Sequence record: MK250029.1
DNA length: 64,000 bases
Reading direction: 5' to 3' (one strand)
Position 1 is the first letter of the stretch. Each line of letters opens with the position of its first letter. Below the pieces are notes generated by a model, which worked only from the letters and a program-made list of their open reading frames with translations, did no database searches and was not told where the DNA came from. A program made the translations under genes and the position numbers. This document shows positions 13,357-61,655 of the stretch, one piece after another.

Positions 13357-13442
13357 NNNNNNNNNNNNNNNNNNNNNNNNGATAAATTAATAATATAAAA
13401 ATAAGGGATTTAAATATACCAAATATTTAAATCCCTTATTTA

Positions 13443-13841
13443 TTAAGATGTTCTAATAACGTCATAACACCATGCGCAATTTAAGAAATCTATGTAGACC
13501 TGTGAATTTCCATTACTTTCTATTCGTAATCGCACAGTTCCCTTATCATAATCTTGATCAATAACATAGAATGTTACTTGTCTACCTCCTTTATTATCAG
13601 TAAAAACATCACCTGTTTTATAAACCTTATATATCTGAGTTTTTGGACTATAAATTGTTATAACATCAGTATTAAGATTAATTGTTAAAACCATATCAGA
13701 TGATTGCCAATCACCCCAATAGTATTTACCGTTATAAATCTTTGCTTCTGCAAATGATGTTGTTTTATAATATTGAATTTGTGCATGTGAAGAAATTACA
13801 AATCCAAATATCATTAAAAAAATAAAAATAAATTTCTTCAT
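13443..13841 (-). CDS. Hypothetical secreted protein (signal peptide)
   Basis: MKKFIFIFLMIFGFVISSHA-Q signal-peptide-like N-terminus. Confidence 0.7.
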   Translation of the reverse strand: MKKFIFIFLMIFGFVISSHAQIQYYKTTSFAEAKIYNGKYYWGDWQSSDMVLTINLNTDVITIYSPKTQIYKVYKTGDVFTDNKGGRQVTFYVIDQDYDKGTVRLRIESNGNSQVYIDFLNCAWCYDVIRTS

Positions 13842-13864
13842 AATAAAATTAATTAAAAAATTAG

Positions 13865-14354
13865 AAGCTTAGATGGGAATCGAACCCATAAAGTTTTTAA
13901 TAACTTACCACACTTATTCACATAAGCAATACTTGAGTAAACTAACAGCTCATCTGTATTTGACTACTGATTTTGATATTATCTCATGATTACTGACTTT
14001 TACTCTCACTACTGTTAACCATTTTTCATTTTTAAGTATTTTGTGGTCTGAACTTTTTTTTACCATATTTAAGTTTGCGCGCTCCTTATTGTAATACCAA
14101 ATGCTCAATGATTAGGTGATAGTCTGCAAATTAACTATACTTCGTGTACTTAAACGTAGGTATCTCCTATAAAGTCTCATCACAATTTATGCTGTAACAC
14201 TACAATTTACATTTAAAATAGATTCACGTTCTATTACAATTTAGTGGAATATAATCTATTATCAAAAATAGATTAATATTCATTAGGGAGATTTTTATCA
14301 CTATGTATTTCTAACATGTGTAAATATTTTTTAAACTTATTCCAAATCTAAGCT
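13865..14354 (-). ncRNA. 490-nt tmRNA-like / tRNA-mimic RNA
   Basis: 5' AGCTTAG pairs with 3' CTAAGCT; T arm ATGGG-TTCGATT-CCCAT; stemless D-loop ATTTGGAAT; long helix AAGTTT..TTTAC.ACA / TGTG.GTAAG..AAACTT; no long ORF; intergenic. Confidence 0.65.
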
Positions 14355-14384
14355 TAACCATGTTTATTATATATTGTTAATATA

Positions 14385-14729
14385 TCAATGTCTACCAAAC
14401 AAAGACAAAAACTTTTTAATTAATGAATTATTAGATTTATTTAGGTTATTATCTGTTTTAATTACACTAATTATATTTGATATATTTGTACCTATTAGCA
14501 TATCTTGACCATCAATTTTTAATGTTATATTATTATACATAATACCTTGATATGTATTATCATCATTTAAAAATGGTATTAATGCTTTACTATACTTATT
14601 TTCTTCTTTGTTTACCGTTTTCTGATAATTAATATATGCATTGCTTTCTAATTTAACAATCAATGCATCCTTATCACTTATATTGGTTCTTACTTTATCT
14701 CCTATATGTAAGTCTTCAATCTTTAACAT
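14385..14729 (-). CDS. Hypothetical protein
   Basis: 114-aa ORF, KOW/YopX-like start (LKIEDLHIGDKV). Confidence 0.6.
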   Translation of the reverse strand: MLKIEDLHIGDKVRTNISDKDALIVKLESNAYINYQKTVNKEENKYSKALIPFLNDDNTYQGIMYNNITLKIDGQDMLIGTNISNIISVIKTDNNLNKSNNSLIKKFLSLFGRH

Positions 14730-15681
14730 AATTTTTAATAAAAATAATTTCTTTTAATAAAGATTCAGTTAAACAGGAAATATATAATTCTTTATTTGAA
14801 TCATCTAACCAATTTACTATAGCTTTATTTATATAAGATATGATGTCTAATATTTTATCTTTATGTCGTTTATCATTTAAGTATTCTTTTAATACATTAA
14901 ATATTACAGTATTATCATATTTGTAATTTTTACTGAATACGAAATCGATTAATGTTTCAAATGAATTAGTATCTGTAAATGTAGCTGTTTCCCCTAATAT
15001 AAATTTAATAATTTCGTTAATATCATTTGTAATAAATTTATCATCTTCTTTTACAGTAACTGGATTCTTCAATAATCCTCTTTTACCGTTATATGTTTTA
15101 TGTCGTAAAAATAAACCTTTATCATATGTTAATGTATATTTCCAGAAATCAGTTAATACATGATCATCATTATATACATCCGGTATATTAGTAGGAATAA
15201 AACTTGCTAAATCAATTAACAAATTTGTTCTATATAAACCTTTGAAGTTTGATTCGTTATTTCTGTAATCTGGTGAATGATACATAAATTTTGAATATTC
15301 TATATCATTAGAAAACATTAAATCTACTTGAACAACATCTCTAACCCACTTAACACCAAAAGAAATTATATGAAAACCAGAACTGACTTTTATTTGAGGT
15401 TCATTATTAGAAAACGCTGGACAAATCTTATTACGAATACAATTTTCTATTGCATTAATATTGTTATCAGAGAATTCAAGTTCAACAGCAATATCAATAT
15501 CGCCTGAATACTCATCATCTTTTTTCTTCCCTGTTGAACCTAATGTGCATGCATTAAAATTCATTATATTTCCGTCAGTATCTTTACAATTATGTGTTAA
15601 ATTATCTATTACCATACTTGCTATATATACTGCATCAAAATTTCTAACAGGCACAGAGCCTTTAATTGCCATACCACTCAT
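14716..15681 (-). CDS. Nucleotidyltransferase (Pol-beta superfamily)
   Basis: TLGSTGKK...SGDIDIAVE and later VQVDLMF (GS..DxD..D signature). Confidence 0.75.
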   Translation of the reverse strand: MSGMAIKGSVPVRNFDAVYIASMVIDNLTHNCKDTDGNIMNFNACTLGSTGKKKDDEYSGDIDIAVELEFSDNNINAIENCIRNKICPAFSNNEPQIKVSSGFHIISFGVKWVRDVVQVDLMFSNDIEYSKFMYHSPDYRNNESNFKGLYRTNLLIDLASFIPTNIPDVYNDDHVLTDFWKYTLTYDKGLFLRHKTYNGKRGLLKNPVTVKEDDKFITNDINEIIKFILGETATFTDTNSFETLIDFVFSKNYKYDNTVIFNVLKEYLNDKRHKDKILDIISYINKAIVNWLDDSNKELYISCLTESLLKEIIFIKNYVKD

Positions 15682-19799: not shown

Positions 19800-20054
19800 T
19801 TAGATTTTTGGTATATTAAAATTTGGGGTTGGTATATTAGGTGGTTGATAACTATTTGTTAAACCTGATGGATTACTCATTTGATTTTTTAAATCATTCA
19901 TGTTATAACGACTTTGCATATTATTCATTTGTTTTTCCATACGCTGATTTTCTTCTTTATTTTGTTTTTCTTGCTCTTCCATATTTTCTTTATAAACATC
20001 TAATATATCAAGAATTTCAAAAAAAGACATTTCTTTAATATCTTGAAAACTTAG
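19800..20054 (-). CDS. Baseplate hub assembly chaperone-like C-terminus (T4 gp51-like; 5' masked)
   Basis: LSFQDIKEMSFFEILDILDVYKENMEEQEK resembles the gp51/gp26 C-terminal pattern. Confidence 0.45.
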   Translation of the reverse strand, partial: LSFQDIKEMSFFEILDILDVYKENMEEQEKQNKEENQRMEKQMNNMQSRYNMNDLKNQMSNPSGLTNSYQPPNIPTPNFNIPKI

Positions 20055-21249
20055 NNNNNNNNNNNNNNNNNNNNNNNNNNNNNNNNNNNNNNNNNNNNNN
20101 NNNNNNNNNNNNNNNNNNNNNNNNNNNNNNNNNNNNNNNNNNNNNNNNNNNNNNNNNNNNNNNNNNNNNNNNNNNNNNNNNNNNNNNNNNNNNNNNNNNN
20201 NNNNNNNNNNNNNNNNNNNNNNNNNNNNNNNNNNNNNNNNNNNNNNNNNNNNNNNNNNNNNNNNNNNNNNNNNNNNNNNNNNNNNNNNNNNNNNNNNNNN
20301 NNNNNNNNNNNNNNNNNNNNNNNNNNNNNNNNNNNNNNNNNNNNNNNNNNNNNNNNNNNNNNNNNNNNNNNNNNNNNNNNNNNNNNNNNNNNNNNNNNNN
20401 NNNNNNNNNNNNNNNNNNNNNNNNNNNNNNNNNNNNNNNNNNNNNNNNNNNNNNNNNNNNNNNNNNNNNNNNNNNNNNNNNNNNNNNNNNNNNNNNNNNN
20501 NNNNNNNNNNNNNNNNNNNNNNNNNNNNNNNNNNNNNNNNNNNNNNNNNNNNNNNNNNNNNNNNNNNNNNNNNNNNNNNNNNNNNNNNNNNNNNNNNNNN
20601 NNNNNNNNNNNNNNNNNNNNNNNNNNNNNNNNNNNNNNNNNNNNNNNNNNNNNNNNNNNNNNNNNNNNNNNNNNNNNNNNNNNNNNNNNNNNNNNNNNNN
20701 NNNNNNNNNNNNNNNNNNNNNNNNNNNNNNNNNNNNNNNNNNNNNNNNNNTATAAAATCTGTCAATTTCTTTAAGGTCTTTCCATGTTGCCTGCCCAGTT
20801 GGAAATGAAATCTTCATACAACGTTCAATGATATAACTTAATGCATCATCAATTGCACTTACATCTGTTTCATCTGTCATAGACCAGTGTCTAATATCAC
20901 CACCTGATGCTGCACGTACAAAAATTCGTGTTCCTTCTGGATAGAAAATACCACCCGTTGGAAGAGACTCTAATGGTAATTCAAGAAATCCCATACCACT
21001 GTCATGAATTTCTTTCTTCAATTCATCCTGACGTATTGCATGTGCTTCTCTCATACTTGGTCGTGCTTTCGCATCTGCAACTTGCTCTGCAAAATGTTCC
21101 TGTGCTGTTTGTACATTTTCTACACTTGGTGCTTTCTTTGTGTTTGCTTTTGTCTTTCCTTGTTCAATCTCTGCAAGATGTGCTGCACCTTCTGCTGTCT
21201 ATGCATACTGTGCAAGAACATCTTCTACTGTATGTTTCTAATCTGACAT
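20035..21249 (-). CDS. Baseplate hub protein, T4 gp26-like (middle masked; 3' end uncertain)
   Basis: LELPLESLPTGGIFYPEG..IFVRA; start extended to ATG 21249 across TAGs at codons 4 and 17. Confidence 0.55.
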
Positions 21250-21320
21250 AATTTCGAAATTATTGTTTGTTTTATTTTATACTAAATTATTTAACTTTTG
21301 TTTACTTTATTTTATTAAGA

Positions 21321-23465
21321 CTAGTATTCTACTTTTCCTTCATAAAGAGTTGATTGNNNNNNNNNNNNNNNNNNNNNNNNNNNNNNNNNNNNNNNNNNNN
21401 NNNNNNNNNNNNNNNNNNNNNNNNNNNNNNNNNNNNNNNNNNNNNNNNNNNNNNNNNNNNNNNNNNNNNNNNNNNNNNNNNNNNNNNNNNNNNNNNNNNN
21501 NNNNNNNNNNNNNNNNNNNNNNNNNNNNNNNNNNNNNNNNNNNNNNNNNNNNNNNNNNNNNNNNNNNNNNNNNNNNNNNNNNNNNNNNNNNNNNNNNNNN
21601 NNNNNNNNNNNNNNNNNNNNNNNNNNNNNNNNNNNNNNNNNNNNNNNNNNNNNNNNNNNNNNNNNNNNNNNNNNNNNNNNNNNNNNNNNNNNNNNNNNNN
21701 NNNNNNNNNNNNNNNNNNNNNNNNNNNNNNNNNNNNNNNNNNNNNNNNNNNNNNNNNNNNNNNNNNNNNNNNNNNNNNNNNNNNNNNNNNNNNNNNNNNN
21801 NNNNNNNNNNNNNNNNNNNNNNNNNNNNNNNNNNNNNNNNNNNNNNNNNNNNNNNNNNNNNNNNNNNNNNNNNNNNNNNNNNNNNNNNNNNNNNNNNNNN
21901 NNNNNNNNNNNNNNNNNNNNNNNNNNNNNNNNNNNNNNNCTAATAGAATTACATTTCATATTATTTCTTATTTGTGGTTTAGGTGTATATTTACATTTCC
22001 AAAATGAGCCTTCTATATCTTTATTATGTTTTGAATAATCGATTATATTAGTAAAACTTTCTATTGACTCTATTGTATCAGTTTTCCCATCACTTTCTAA
22101 TAATCTTGTATTCGGTATATAATTATATGTAACAGTAACTTCATTATAAATAATCCATTTTGCAGCATTATCNNNNNNNNNNNNNNNNNNNNNNNNNNNN
22201 NNNACATTAGATAAATTATCATAAAACGCTTCAGAAACCAATGGAATCTCATTATATTCTATTCTTCTCATAATATCATCTGAAAGCTCAACTACATTAT
22301 TTCCTTCGCCATATACTGGATAATATACAATTTCTTTATTATCAATATCCTCATATATTCTTATATTGAAGTAATCAGAATTCGATTTATACTTTATAGC
22401 AATCTGATTTATTGGATCTTGATGGAATGTACTTGCATATATATTAGGATCTGTTGATGTAAGATTACCTTCTGAAACTGTTGCAAAATTTATAATTAAT
22501 GTAGGATCACTCAATATCTCATATACTAATGTACGTTGTGTATTATCATTTGGTATTTTTCCATAATTTAGTATATGATCATTTTCATCTTTAATTAATT
22601 CACCATGTCCATATTTACTTTCTACTGATAATTTTAAATGATTTAATGACATATAATATGCGGATGGTACAAAAAATTCTATATATCTATCATAAAAACA
22701 ACCATTCTGATATATTGGAGATTTATGCCAATGAACAGCATCTGAAAGAATAGTCAAACATTCTTTAGGGNNNNNNNNNNNNNNNNNNNNNNNNNNNNNN
22801 NNNNTCTATGACAATTTTTCAACCTCTGTTTGTTTTGCTCCATTCTAATATGCATACTATACTGCAGTTGGATTATCATTTGCAGTTACAACATTATTAT
22901 CATCTATCAATATAGATTCAGCTTCAAATATAGGATTATGATATTCATCATACATTTTATATGTATTACTATTTTGATACATTTTCTAAGAAGGTGCTAA
23001 ATATCCTGCATTCGTTTTTACTTGTAATGTTATACCAGCTAATCTATCTAATGTAAAACCATATATAAAANNNNNNNNNNNNNNNNNNNNNNNNNNTTTA
23101 CCACCTTTATGTTCTGTATATGTATCTACATGATCCACAATATTTAATAAAGAATCATTACTATATTTGCCATCTTGCTATTTTTTTAAACCAACAAATG
23201 TATATTCTGACATTGATTCATCTGGGAACTTAATAAAATACTAAGCTTTAGAATATCTATACTTTTCTGAATCATCCTCATTTAGTTTCTACTACTTATC
23301 TGAATTCCGCTTATCTGTATAATATATATTACCATCTTTACCTATATATACTGTATAATCTATTGATTTTTCATCAGGTTCACCACCATTTGCATCATAC
23401 TAATTAGCTACATATTCTAACATTATCTGATTAGTAACCTAATAAAACTTTGATAATTCTGCCAT
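21321..23465 (-). CDS. Large hypothetical protein, probably virion-structural (TAG-rich, partly masked)
   Basis: ATG 23465 (MAELSKFY(Q)VTN(Q)IMLEY) is in frame with track ORF 21321-22757; located between spanin-like and baseplate genes. Confidence 0.6.
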
Positions 23466-23524: not shown

Positions 23525-24237
23525 TTAGAATTGAATTATTCCATATGAAATGCCAATACCAATATATGGTGTTAACTTCNNNNNNNNNNNNNNNNNNNNN
23601 NNNNTTGTAGGACCTATAGACCATTTTTTCTGTTTATAATATTTCTTCAAATATTTAAATTTTGATGGGTCAAACATAACACCATCCATATTACTGATAG
23701 AAATATATGGATTATCTGTTCTACCTATTAATCTAATTCCAGATTTATCTTCAATAATATCTAATGTTAAATTTGTATTCATAGTAAATTGATCTATATG
23801 TGCAGAGAATGATGAAAAGTTTTTTCTGACATCTGTTCCACCAGTAACTGCATAATATCCTTTTGGTTCATCAATATGCCATTTTAAATTATATATAGAA
23901 TCACCATGTATAATTGTATCAGACTATGCATATACAGTATCAATTTTTGTATGCATCTTTGTCTATGTAATTACTAAAGGATTATCTTTTAATGATTTTA
24001 ATTCCTATGCTAATTCACAATTCTGATTTTGTAAATCTTTTATATTCTGTACATAGATTTTTTTTGATACATATAAATTCTTTAATTTATTCTTGTAAAT
24101 TTCTAATGAATCACTATTATATATTACCAATGGTGGTTTAATTGATTTTGATTCATAATGTCGATATTTCATGTAACATACACATGAAATCATTACAAAT
24201 AAGATAATAACATAATCTTTAAATGTTAATTTCTTAT
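23525..24237 (-). CDS. Spanin-like membrane/periplasmic protein (start masked, TAG-containing)
   Basis: N-terminal TM (VIILFVMISCVCY), coiled coil, TKIDTVY, C-terminal KKWSIGP...LTPYIGIGISYGIIQF as in Bacteroidetes phage lysis proteins; two track ORFs share one frame. Confidence 0.45.
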
Positions 24238-24384
24238 NNNNNNNNNNNNNNNNNNNNNNNNNNNNNNNNNNNNNNNNNNNNNNNNNNNNNNNNNNNNNNN
24301 NNNNNNNNNNNNNNNNNNNNNNNNNNNNNNNNNNNNNNNNNNNNNNNNNNNNNNNNNNNNNNNNNNNNNNNNNNNNNNNNNNNN

Positions 24385-24597
24385 TTGAGATAGATATTAT
24401 ATATAATATAGAAAAAATTTAATCTTTAAGAAATAATTTTAAATATTTATTTTTATTATAATTTATATATGATTTTTAATAAATATTTTTTTTAAAAATA
24501 TTTCTTTAAAATCTAGACTTTTTTGAAGAACTTAAGTATAATAAATATGTTAATATTTAAGGTTGAGATAGATATTATATATAATATAGAAAAAATT
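24385..24597. repeat. 35-bp direct repeat x2 in an AT-rich intergenic region
   Basis: ttgagatagatattatatataatatagaaaaaatt at 24385 and 24563. Confidence 0.85.
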
Positions 24598-24713
24598 ATT
24601 TTTAATTCAGATTTAAATTTATGTAATTTAGATCTGAATTTTTATTTTATATATTAATATATTATTTAGAATTTGTATAAATTAACATATAAATAATATT
24701 GATAATCAGTTAT

Positions 24714-26237
24714 TTATAAATTATTTTTAAAAACCATTAAAAATATTTTATAAATAAGTAGACTTTTTCTGGNNNNNNNNNNNNNNNNNNNNNNNNNNNN
24801 NNNNNNNNNNNNNNNNNNNNNNNNNNNNNNNNNNNNNNNNNNNNNNNNNNNNNNNNNNNNNNNNNNNNNNNNNNNNNNNNNNNNNNNNNNNNNNNNNNNN
24901 NNNNNNNNNNNNNNNNNNNNNNNNNNNNNNNNNNNNNNNNNNNNNNNNNNNNNNNNNNNNNNNNNNNNNNNNNNNNNNNNNNNNNNNNNNNNNNNNNNNN
25001 NNNNNNNNNNNNNNNNNNNNNNNNNNNNNNNNNNNNNNNNNNNNNNNNNNNNNNNNNNNNNNNNNNNNNNNNNNNNNNNNNNNNNNNNNNNNNNNNNNNN
25101 NNNNNNNNNNNNNNNNNNNNNNNNNNNNNNNNNNNNNNNNNNNNNNNNNNNNNNNNNNNNNNNNNNNNNNNNNNNNNNNNNNNNNNNNNNNNNNNNNNNN
25201 NNNNNNNNNNNNNNNNNNNNNNNNNNNNNNNNNNNNNNNNNNNNNNNNNNNNNNNNNNNNNNNNNNNNNNNNNNNNNNNNNNNNNNNNNNNNNNNNNNNN
25301 NNNNNNNNNNNNNNNNNNNNNNNNNNNNNNNNNNNNNNNNNNNNNNNNNNNNNNNNNNNNNNNNNNNNNNNNNNNNNNNNNNNNNNNNNNNNNNNNNNNN
25401 NNNNNNNNNNNNNNNNNNNNNNNNNNNNNNNNNNNNNNNNNNNNNNNNNNNNNNNNNNNNNNNNNNNNNNNNNNNNNNNNNNNNNNNNNNNNNNNNNNNN
25501 NNNNNNNNNNNNNNNNNNNNNTTTGGAAATCTATAAATTCTATCAGGATTGAGTTTCTTTCTTGTATTAATTAAAAGTTCTCGATCTTCTGGATGTTCAT
25601 TTAAATGTCTTCCATAATCATAATAACAACCATAAATATATTGCATATGATTTATATTACATAAACCACAATATTCTGTATGCAAACCATAATCATTTAG
25701 AAATGTTAAAATATTAGTTGAACCCTGACGTCTGAAAGTATATGTAAAATCAAGCGGTGTTTTTCGCTCTTTAATAGGATTTACAATTTTCTTATTAAGA
25801 CCTCTCGCTTTATAAATTTGAGATTCAGCATACTTATAGAATGATATAAAACATTGTTTAGTCAAAAACATATCTCTATGCTCTCTANNNNNNNNNNNNN
25901 NNNNNNNNNCTTCACCTATAATAAAATTATCATCTACAAATAAAGCTTCAAGAATATTAGGATTTGCCTTTACAAGTAATGATATAAATTTATTAAGTTC
26001 ATACCATTTATTATCATTCTTTGAATCTGCGATTTCTTCTTTGTATGTATTATAACCAAGAAGTTCTTTAATTGAACAAATGTAAATTCCACCTGAATCA
26101 ATATCCGAAGTTGGCGTTGAAAGACCATAGCTGGTACTTCCTCTCACATATTCTATAAGAAGTCTTCCATCATTTCTAATTTTATCGAATTCAGGAATTC
26201 CAACTGTTTCTGTTTTAAAATTCTTATATGATTTCAT
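24714..26237 (-). CDS. Nucleotidyltransferase, RlaP/YcgL (PF10127)-like; 3' half masked, end uncertain
   Basis: YVRGSTSYGLSTPTSDIDSGGIY, WYELNKFISLLVKANPNILEALF. Confidence 0.8.
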   Translation of the reverse strand: MKSYKNFKTETVGIPEFDKIRNDGRLLIEYVRGSTSYGLSTPTSDIDSGGIYICSIKELLGYNTYKEEIADSKNDNKWYELNKFISLLVKANPNILEALFVDDNFIIGEXXXXXXXXREHRDMFLTKQCFISFYKYAESQIYKARGLNKKIVNPIKERKTPLDFTYTFRRQGSTNILTFLNDYGLHTEYCGLCNINHMQYIYGCYYDYGRHLNEHPEDRELLINTRKKLNPDRIYRFPXXXXXXXXXXXXXXXXXXXXXXXXXXXXXXXXXXXXXXXXXXXXXXXXXXXXXXXXXXXXXXXXXXXXXXXXXXXXXXXXXXXXXXXXXXXXXXXXXXXXXXXXXXXXXXXXXXXXXXXXXXXXXXXXXXXXXXXXXXXXXXXXXXXXXXXXXXXXXXXXXXXXXXXXXXXXXXXXXXXXXXXXXXXXXXXXXXXXXXXXXXXXXXXXXXXXXXXXXXXXXXXXXXXXXXXXXXXXXXXXXXXXXXXXXXXRKSLLIYKIFLMVFKNNL

Positions 26238-60310: not shown

Positions 60311-60565
60311 TCGGTATGGCTCTAAAGGAGAGAGCATCATTTATGACTAATGATGACGAAGATTTGTTCGTAAGTTAATCTTTACTAAGAGAATATACAA
60401 TATTTAGTTATATAGAAGTAATTTAATTGTTATAATGCGAAGACAATTTTATATGAAACTATATATGTCATTTATGAGATTATAGTGAAGAATAGCATTT
60501 ACAGTAACTATAATAAGATGATATAAACAATATAACTTCTGTGGTTCGATTCCACACGTACTGAC
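60311..60565 (+). ncRNA. tRNA-like RNA with ~185-nt variable region (nominal anticodon TGA)
   Basis: Acceptor TCGGTATG/CGTACTGA, D arm GCTC-TAAAGGAGA-GAGC, stem TCATT-TATGACT-AATGA, T arm TGTGG-TTCGATT-CCACA. Confidence 0.65.
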
Positions 60566-61169: not shown

Positions 61170-61340
61170 GTCTGTATTTCACAATGGTTAATGAGGTACA
61201 TGAAAAGTGATTTGGAAGAATCATTATAGATATATATGATTAAGATAACGTTCAACTAAGCTATAGAATAATAGTAAGTACAGCGCTGAAAATATATGTT
61301 TATATGTATTGCGGTTGTGGTTCGATTCCACATACAGACA
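61170..61340 (+). ncRNA. tRNA-like RNA with expanded anticodon and variable arms
   Basis: Perfect acceptor GTCTGTA/TACAGAC + A73, D loop with GG (CAATGGTTAA), T arm TGTGG-TTCGATT-CCACA; 171 nt. Confidence 0.65.
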
Positions 61341-61562
61341 CGACTTATTAATGATGAAAAGTCTGCACTTAACAAAATATAAAAAACATTTTAATGTACT
61401 GTTGATTATATGTTTTAATTTTGTTAACTAAGAGATTCTTGTAAATTATAAAAATTTACAAATCGAGGGGAACGCATAACGGCAATTATGTTAGTACTTG
61501 GCGTTTAATGAAATGAATATGTATATTTGCCGATGTGCATATGAGTGACATTAAATGATAAA

Positions 61563-61655
61563 ATTATAATAGTGTAGCGGTTCGCACGCCCGTTGGTAAA
61601 ACGGGAAGGGTTTATGTTTGAAAGCATATTAGGGGTTCGACTCCCGCTTATAAAC
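61563..61655 (+). tRNA. Degenerate class II tRNA, nominal Tyr(GTA)
   Basis: D stem GTGT/GCAC, anticodon stem CCCGT-TGGTAAA-ACGGG, variable hairpin, GGG-TTCGACT-CCC; G33, weak T stem, 6-bp all-AT acceptor. Confidence 0.45.

Follow-up and report, generated by a model that had tools for sequence, protein, structure and literature searches.

The minus strand of Prevotella phage Lak-C1 (MK250029.1) carries what is probably a small tRNA-like gene with its own transcript, split by a 429-nt group I intron from a mobile gut-phage family. The locus lies in the last 64 kb of the record, and this whole stretch of 64,000 nucleotides is what we call the window (record position = window position + 476217). 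The scheme that best accounts for our data is that transcription would start at G14359 from a TAGACA-17-TATAAT promoter, that the minihelix formed by the acceptor stem and the T arm would direct tRNA-type 3′ trimming at U13865, and that self-splicing of the intron would yield a 61–62-nt product made of an acceptor stem, a stemless GG loop, an 8-bp hairpin and a T arm. Most of the RNA that can be detected in metatranscriptomes would stay unspliced and joined end to end (3′ to 5′), most likely as a covalently closed circle sealed by a ligase. The most probable 'purpose' of the unit is the persistence of a selfish intron in a harmless tRNA-like host gene.

A probable tRNA-like gene and its intron family

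The window has a G+C content of ~24%, falling to 0.10–0.12 at 20001–22000 and 24001–26000, and contains 3717 N. Its open-frame coverage rises from 0.73 to 0.92 once TAG is read as a sense codon, which fits code 15, known for Lak phages (PMC6784885). The features of the locus, all on the minus strand, are the following.

14366–14394, minus strand: sigma-70-like promoter TAGACA-17 nt-TATAAT, with 11/12 consensus matches, the best site in 13700–14500
13865–14359, minus strand: whole RNA unit of 495 nt (leader GGUU(A), exon 1, intron, exon 2), ending at the discriminator U13865, from RNA-library contigs
14333–14354, minus strand: exon 1, 22 nt (AGCUUAG acceptor 5′ strand, unpaired AUUUGGAAU, AAGUUU), boundary placed by homology to the tRNA-Leu and primase introns
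13904–14332, minus strand: predicted group I intron, 429 nt, with ~80% core identity to the Lak tRNA-Leu(UAA) and cr116_1/IAS primase introns
14332–14321, minus strand: P1/P10 guide AAAAA(A/G)UAUUUA of the intron
14320–14299, minus strand: P2 of the intron
14292–14287 with 14167–14162, minus strand: P3 of the intron
14176–14171 with 14056–14051, minus strand: P7 of the intron
14161–14148 with 14074–14062, minus strand: P8 of the intron
13926–13913, minus strand: terminal hairpin CUUAU-GUGA-AUAAG of the intron
13904, minus strand: terminal G of the intron
13865–13903, minus strand: exon 2, 39 nt (UUAUUAAAAACUUU, T arm AUGGG-UUCGAUU-CCCAU at 13889–13873, CUAAGCU at 13872–13866, discriminator U13865), from sequence reading
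14354–14348 with 13872–13866, minus strand: acceptor-like helix AGCUUAG/CUAAGCU, in which pair 3-70 is C14352-G13868; an eighth pair, A14355-U13865, completes the 8-bp helix AAGCUUAG/CUAAGCUU
14347–14339, minus strand: unpaired, GG-containing stretch ATTTGGAAT
14127, minus strand: GCA opening the frame ADYHLIIEHLVLQ, which ends ...HLVLQ before a stop

The initial annotation had described an RNA laid out like a tmRNA with a non-alanine acceptor stem, and the elements from which it argued (the acceptor helix, the T arm, the stemless GG loop, the C-G pair 3-70 and the frame from GCA 14127) can all be read in the sequence. We estimate from base composition that, in DNA of 24% GC, a perfect 7-mer partner would occur by chance within 700 nt upstream in ~2–5% of cases. 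The promoter predicts a transcription start at G14359, 7 nt downstream of TATAAT. Pfam holds no family for the four ORFs neighbouring the element, and a look-up aimed at the RNA contigs returned no record of the 52-aa ORF within it. Our literature search returned no description of the Lak-C1 13865–14359 locus, nor of phage circular ribozyme RNAs, and the locus is absent from the tRNA introns reported for Lak phages (PMC6784885).

The assignment of the interior to group I is based on homology and on hand-checked pairings among only ~4 divergent lineages. Counted by script, the core pairs retained across 7 sequences number 6 in P3, 6 in P7 and 3+7 in P8, and two double compensatory changes occur among them. 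P3 (AUCUCC/GGAGAU) is invariant, P7 (GACU(A/U)U/A(U/A)AGU(C/U)) contains one double change from U-A to A-U and one change from G-C to G-U, and the long P8 contains the other U-A to A-U double change. Covariation between copies is also seen in P2, P5 and the terminal hairpin, the P4–P6 region has a like fold in every copy despite differing sequence, R- and S-like motifs are found in the intron family, and the terminal G is conserved in all copies. The Rfam model RF00028 gave no match at E≤10 for the intron of the Lak-C1 element or for its sister copies, and no small self-cleaving ribozyme family was found in 13500–14700 (Rfam, E-value mode).

Pairings across the splice sites can be drawn for both exons. 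P1 joins UAAGUUU, the last 7 nt of exon 1, to the guide segment (G/A)UAUUUA at 14327–14321 with 6/7 pairs, and P10 joins the guide segment AAAAA to the start of exon 2, UUAUU, with 4/5 pairs. In the sister introns the guides are GAGU for ACUU and UUU(U) for AAA(A), and by this comparison the guide appears to be retuned to the site in the Lak-C1 element. Eight of 14 DNA variants have the wobble G of P1, as do all four RNA runs; the remaining six DNA variants, Lak-C1 among them, carry an A at this position, which gives a U-A pair at the splice site and should weaken splicing in these genomes. A rival exon motif, UAGAUUU at 14350–14344, pairs equally well with the guide, so that the 5′ splice site is not certain, its probable place being after the UAAGUUU of exon 1. 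The predicted spliced joint reads GGAAUAAGUUU, or AAUAAGUUU, followed by UUAUUAAAAAC. No spliced joint occurs in the contigs of the four RNA runs, a kind of data that drops rare or short species, and the spliced-exon word, which would reveal an intron-less allele, has 0 matches in IMG/VR.

At ~80% identity, the central ~220 nt of the interior recur at a second site in Lak genomes and in cr116_1, a crAss-like phage. The homolog in this phage, like that in IAS virus, sits between two fragments of a DNA primase gene, and the joined primase exons align with the intact crAss001 primase through the junction (GKVT..LKIYQPF). From this comparison, ...ACUCUU precedes the 5′ splice site and makes a U-G wobble with the guide GAG, and the 3′ splice site follows a conserved ...GUA(A/G)G. 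In Lak-C1, in Lak-B1 and in an IMG/VR relative (G001), the second copy lies in a class II tRNA-Leu(UAA), between U34 and A35, in the context AGGGACUU, intron, AAAAUCCCU, which folds as AGGGA-CUU, intron, AAAA-UCCCU. Excision of the homologs restores their hosts, both the primase reading frame and the tRNA-Leu(UAA). The acceptor stems of the Lak-B1 and Lak-C1 tRNA-Leu(UAA) genes show compensating differences, which argues that this is a live tRNA. A second insert lies in the D loop of the same tRNA-Leu, after GGUAAAG, and matches RF00028 at 41.8 bits (gathering score 50; E=3.5e-9), so that group I introns are demonstrably present in Lak tRNA genes. These lines of sequence comparison place the interior of the Lak-C1 element, as we read them, in a group I intron family that is mobile among gut phages.

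The doubly interrupted tRNA-Leu(UAA) is found in Lak-C1 at record positions 331,980–332,730 (locus L027, 545–1290) and also in L002, L006, L008, L009 and L028, and this gene, with its two group I introns, is conserved across Lak-B, Lak-C and IMG/VR relatives. The published tallies of Lak tRNA introns, 2 for C1 and 1, named tRNA-Tyr, for the B genomes (PMC6784885), are too low to cover it.

Lak-A has the unit and lacks the tRNA-Leu copy, Lak-B has the reverse, and Lak-C1 has both; in Lak-B and cr116_1 only the central ~220 nt of the unit recur. Both flanking ORFs are kept in Lak-B phages, and in Lak-B1 they lie 4 nt apart with the ~540-nt unit absent, which makes the whole unit an insertion or a deletion. 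Judged by this distribution, the unit is dispensable and accessory. Natural variants also differ within the unit. The P9 domain (~110 nt, window 13929–14039) is replaced by cr116-type primase-intron sequence in three DNA contigs (L040, L041 and L044) and in RNA runs X6 and X11, a swap that points to recent recombination between Lak and crAss-like intron copies. One variant (L020) carries a ~260-nt insert near the 3′ end of the intron, and a 26-nt deletion in another (L024) takes in the 5′ splice site and the guide.

What the exons encode

Removal of the intron would leave 22 + 39 nt, that is 61 nt, or 62 nt where the exon has six As. In the fold of the spliced sequence, a GG linker of 9 nt leads from the acceptor stem into a hairpin of 8 bp (AAGUUUUU-AUU-AAAAACUU), and a single U separates this hairpin from the T arm; only 36 nt, with one hairpin, lie between the acceptor and the T arm, and there is no cloverleaf. 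At relaxed settings, Rfam gives a tRNA match of 22.9 bits at 13866–13927, of which the 'D arm' is the conserved intron hairpin. In one variant (L037) a T-stem G-C pair is replaced by A-U through changes on both sides, and this compensatory change indicates selection on the T arm. Variants have either 5 or 6 As in the A-run, and the would-be anticodon loop is accordingly 7 or 8 nt, a polymorphism that argues against decoding. We infer that the intron is able to self-splice and that its removal would release a 61–62-nt D-armless tRNA mimic, neither a decoding tRNA nor a tmRNA. The unit is an accessory insertion, and its exons, as far as their fold can be judged, form a stunted, vestigial tRNA-like gene.

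Two identities would give the exons a conventional role. A working decoder tRNA with an intron, D-armless and reading AAU with the anticodon AUU, is very unlikely. In mitochondrial mode and at an 80% threshold ARAGORN does call the spliced sequence a tRNA-Asn(att) of this kind, and the canonical T arm and acceptor, together with the compensatory T-stem change, are what a functional tRNA would have. However, ARAGORN reports no tRNA in the spliced sequence at default settings, there is no D arm, the variable region is only ~1 nt, the 'anticodon loop' varies between 7 and 8 nt with the A5/A6 polymorphism, A34 and U73 are what we take to be at odds with Asn identity, and Lak-C1 already has two tRNA-Asn(GUU) genes. 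The identity suggested by the initial annotation, a divergent tmRNA or an SmpB/ribosome decoy, is scarcely credible. The exons alone do resemble the tRNA-like domain of tmRNA, having its acceptor stem, T arm and stemless D loop with a helix in place of the anticodon arm, and ARAGORN makes a 'permuted tmRNA' call when its threshold is lowered to 80%. The tmRNA topology proposed for the interior is not borne out, however: ARAGORN by default and Rfam at gathering thresholds find nothing at the locus, and neither RF00023 nor the rest of its clan matches at the gathering threshold or at E≤10. Pair 3-70 is not the G3-U70 of alanine identity. The supposed tag frame from 14127 is located in the P8 region of the intron, most natural variants have a T>A change in it that creates an in-frame TAG and an improved hairpin, and sister introns either lack this segment or have another sequence there. 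The interior shares homology with the tRNA-Leu(UAA) and primase introns and has a group I core, and a canonical tmRNA is present elsewhere in Lak-C1 (record 182229–182625, minus strand; locus L032, 330–726). This gene scores 49.4 bits with RF00023, above the gathering score, has an acceptor GGGGACA/UGUCUCC with G3-U70, encodes a tag ...NDDEIDFRMAA before its stop, and is missed by ARAGORN. On these grounds (no G3-U70, an unconserved tag, a shared intron and a canonical tmRNA elsewhere) we reject a tmRNA identity for the element. The initial annotation had also set against itself the case of an ordinary tRNA with a group I intron; of this, the intron was found, but the exons form no ordinary tRNA. 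The exons may still be an unusual tRNA mimic, which it had listed too. A false lead is thus removed: the element is not a second, non-alanine tmRNA, and the real tmRNA of the phage is placed elsewhere.

Other tRNA-like genes with inserts occur in the same genome. Two Lak-C1 tRNA genes (L013, c[9887,10051]; L014, [2164,2323]), labelled Ser(gct) and Ala(agc) by ARAGORN and read by us as tRNA-Tyr(GUA) and tRNA-Gly(UCC), each have a ~90-nt insert adjoining the anticodon. Both inserts combine an acceptor-like helix of 8 bp with a GG loop and a perfect T arm, and are built like the predicted spliced product; these nested mini-tRNAs may correspond to the 'enigmatic introns' of PMC6784885. The window contains two further tRNA-like genes with large inserts, at 60312–60565 and 61170–61345 (plus strand), both with the T arm TGTGGTTCGATTCCACA and with 7-bp acceptor partners 228 and 146 nt upstream of the T arm, respectively; neither was found by ARAGORN or Rfam. 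At 61563–61655 (plus strand) ARAGORN calls a 93-nt 'tRNA-Tyr' that is unmatched by RF00005. Lak-C1 also has suppressor-type tRNAs, L016 and L034 with anticodon CUA (TAG) and L017 with anticodon UUA (TAA).

RNA contigs and the joined ends

We placed on 13400–14800 the contigs of four RNA libraries, two from a wastewater metatranscriptome (X3 and X6) and two from pig gut (X11 and X14), the four runs coming from three samples and two studies. RNA depth upstream of 14386 is zero in all four runs, and the depth of the unit ranges from 6.6 to 125. The downstream ORF appears in pig runs only, as a separate, shallower contig (unit versus ORF, 125 versus 22 and 45 versus 13.7). Since the RNA contigs span 13864–14361 with nothing upstream, the initial annotation was right in expecting a separate RNA of ~490 nt that a tRNA-like helix closes.

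In every run the contig of the unit has identical 30-nt ends and closes on the same strand, forming an isolated cycle in the k=31 graph. The contigs start and end exactly at the base of the helix (14359/14361 and 13865/13864), and the joints are 14359 to 13865, 14359 to 13866, and 14361 to 13864 with 4 extra letters; the head-to-tail sequence reads CUAAGCUU followed by GGUUAAGC. The 5′ side of the joint coincides with the predicted start G14359 in the window-type variant, and where a variant's leader is longer by 5 nt it shifts accordingly and again falls at −10+7 (AUUAUGG...). On the 3′ side the joint has the discriminator U13865, either bare or followed by C(C), as trimming of the tRNA type would predict. 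The exon–intron boundaries are continuous in all RNA contigs. At the DNA level, eight independent contigs of up to 541 kb have a single linear, unbranched copy, and the junction pattern has 0 matches in IMG/VR and 0 in JGI/ENA metagenome contigs. The contigs suggest that the whole ~495-nt unspliced transcript accumulates end-joined, as a closed circle, the evidence for which consists of assembled contigs; in the two deep runs, the words across the junction could be infrequent.

No mechanism is known for closing an RNA that has a triphosphate at its 5′ end, and a transcript of this kind is not known to serve directly as a ligase substrate. Lak-C1 encodes at least four PF09414 (Rnl2-family) ligase domains above the family cut-off. 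These lie at record positions 208104–208733, 256166–256519, 447019–447543 and 408022–408723, and one of them is interrupted by stop codons. No RtcB was found in Lak-C1; the Rnl1 family gave no match there either, in a search for which the control was equally silent.

Other origins of the joint were considered and rejected. Against a mobile element of the IS-like or MITE kind, bounded by 8-bp inverted ends, the joint has a spacer that differs (4 nt versus ~11 nt) and tracks the transcription start. A full-length intron circle does not fit a joint that lies outside the exons and does not follow a G, and excision from a polycistronic mRNA does not fit the zero RNA depth of the upstream flank.

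The RNA contigs also bear on two further readings. One is that the unspliced ~0.5-kb RNA is itself the functional product, a covalently closed phage RNA with a domesticated intron ribozyme, the tRNA-like clamp serving only to define and join the ends. We entertain this tentatively. It would account for closed cycles in four RNA runs with uninterrupted boundaries and a depth much above that of the flanks, for DNA assemblies with a single linear copy, for the persistence of variants with a weakened or deleted 5′ splice site, and for a joint whose 5′ side follows the predicted start in two leader variants. However, the evidence is at the level of contigs, Lak-B phages manage without the unit, and P9 is freely swapped with the crAss-type intron, which is selfish-intron-like behaviour rather than the mark of a refined function. 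Taken to its full extent, the proposal is that a DNA phage produces large amounts of a covalently closed RNA circle of ~0.5 kb, in which a tRNA-like clamp holds a group I ribozyme and the tRNA-type 3′ end is joined to the start of the transcript, and that this circle, or a ~66-nt circular tRNA mimic that splicing would release from it, has a role of its own in infection; we offer it as speculation. The other reading takes the joint for a tandem DNA duplication in some strains or a reverse-transcriptase template switch between the paired ends, and we regard this as possible, if doubtful. The data are contigs, and a rare junction suffices to close the graph in the two deep runs; yet the graph also closes at a depth of 6.6–7.9 in the wastewater sample, where the flanks are at zero depth and DNA carry-over is unlikely, long DNA contigs are unbranched at the locus, and the joints are same-strand ones, not strand switches. 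We continue to favour a selfish intron housed in a tRNA-like gene, with a transcript that would remain for the most part unspliced and end-joined.

If the circle is real, it is a rare natural phage-encoded circular RNA with a ribozyme, and it bears on how stable RNAs are made in bacteria and on how 'viroid-like' circles in metatranscriptomes are read. If the circle splices, a ~66-nt circular tRNA-like RNA would be released.

Comparison with known systems

One intron family, common to Lak megaphages and crAss-like phages, connects three kinds of host: tRNA, tRNA-like and protein-coding genes. An intron-bearing tmRNA gene exists in Clostridium botulinum. The Lak-C1 element is like tmRNA in its stemless D loop, its T arm and the several hundred nucleotides between its halves, and differs in having neither G3-U70, nor a tag frame, nor a pseudoknot body. 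Circular tRNA-related RNAs include the intermediates of permuted tRNA genes and the circularised tRNA introns of archaea and animals, which arise by bulge-helix-bulge cleavage and RtcB ligation. The RNA described here would share with them the circular form, with a short linker closing an acceptor-type helix, but its ends resemble a transcription start and a tRNA-type 3′ end, and RtcB was not found in the phage.

A review (PMC3984707) covers the tRNA-Leu(UAA) group I intron found in cyanobacteria and plastids, together with those of other bacterial tRNAs. Like them, the Lak-C1 intron is located in the anticodon region of a tRNA-type gene and is predicted to be self-splicing, and its sister copy in the Lak tRNA-Leu(UAA) occupies the same 34/35 site. 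As in these introns, the predicted 5′ exon has U as its last base and the intron a terminal G, and P1 and P10 would form with exon bases. Unlike them, the Lak/crAss family is missed by RF00028, has a long P8 and variable P2 and P9 extensions, and is also found in a protein-coding gene, and the exons of the Lak-C1 element form no real tRNA.

The closest comparison within the same phages is with the 'enigmatic' tRNA introns described by Devoto et al., 2019 (PMC6784885). Our analysis helps to explain these, in that the family can be carried by a gene with exons of no apparent coding or decoding use. Both involve small tRNA-like units with an 8-bp acceptor helix, a T arm and a GG loop. The 'enigmatic' inserts, however, are ~90 nt long, lie at or next to 37/38 and have no ribozyme core, whereas at the locus studied here the tRNA-like sequence is the host and the insert is the group I intron.
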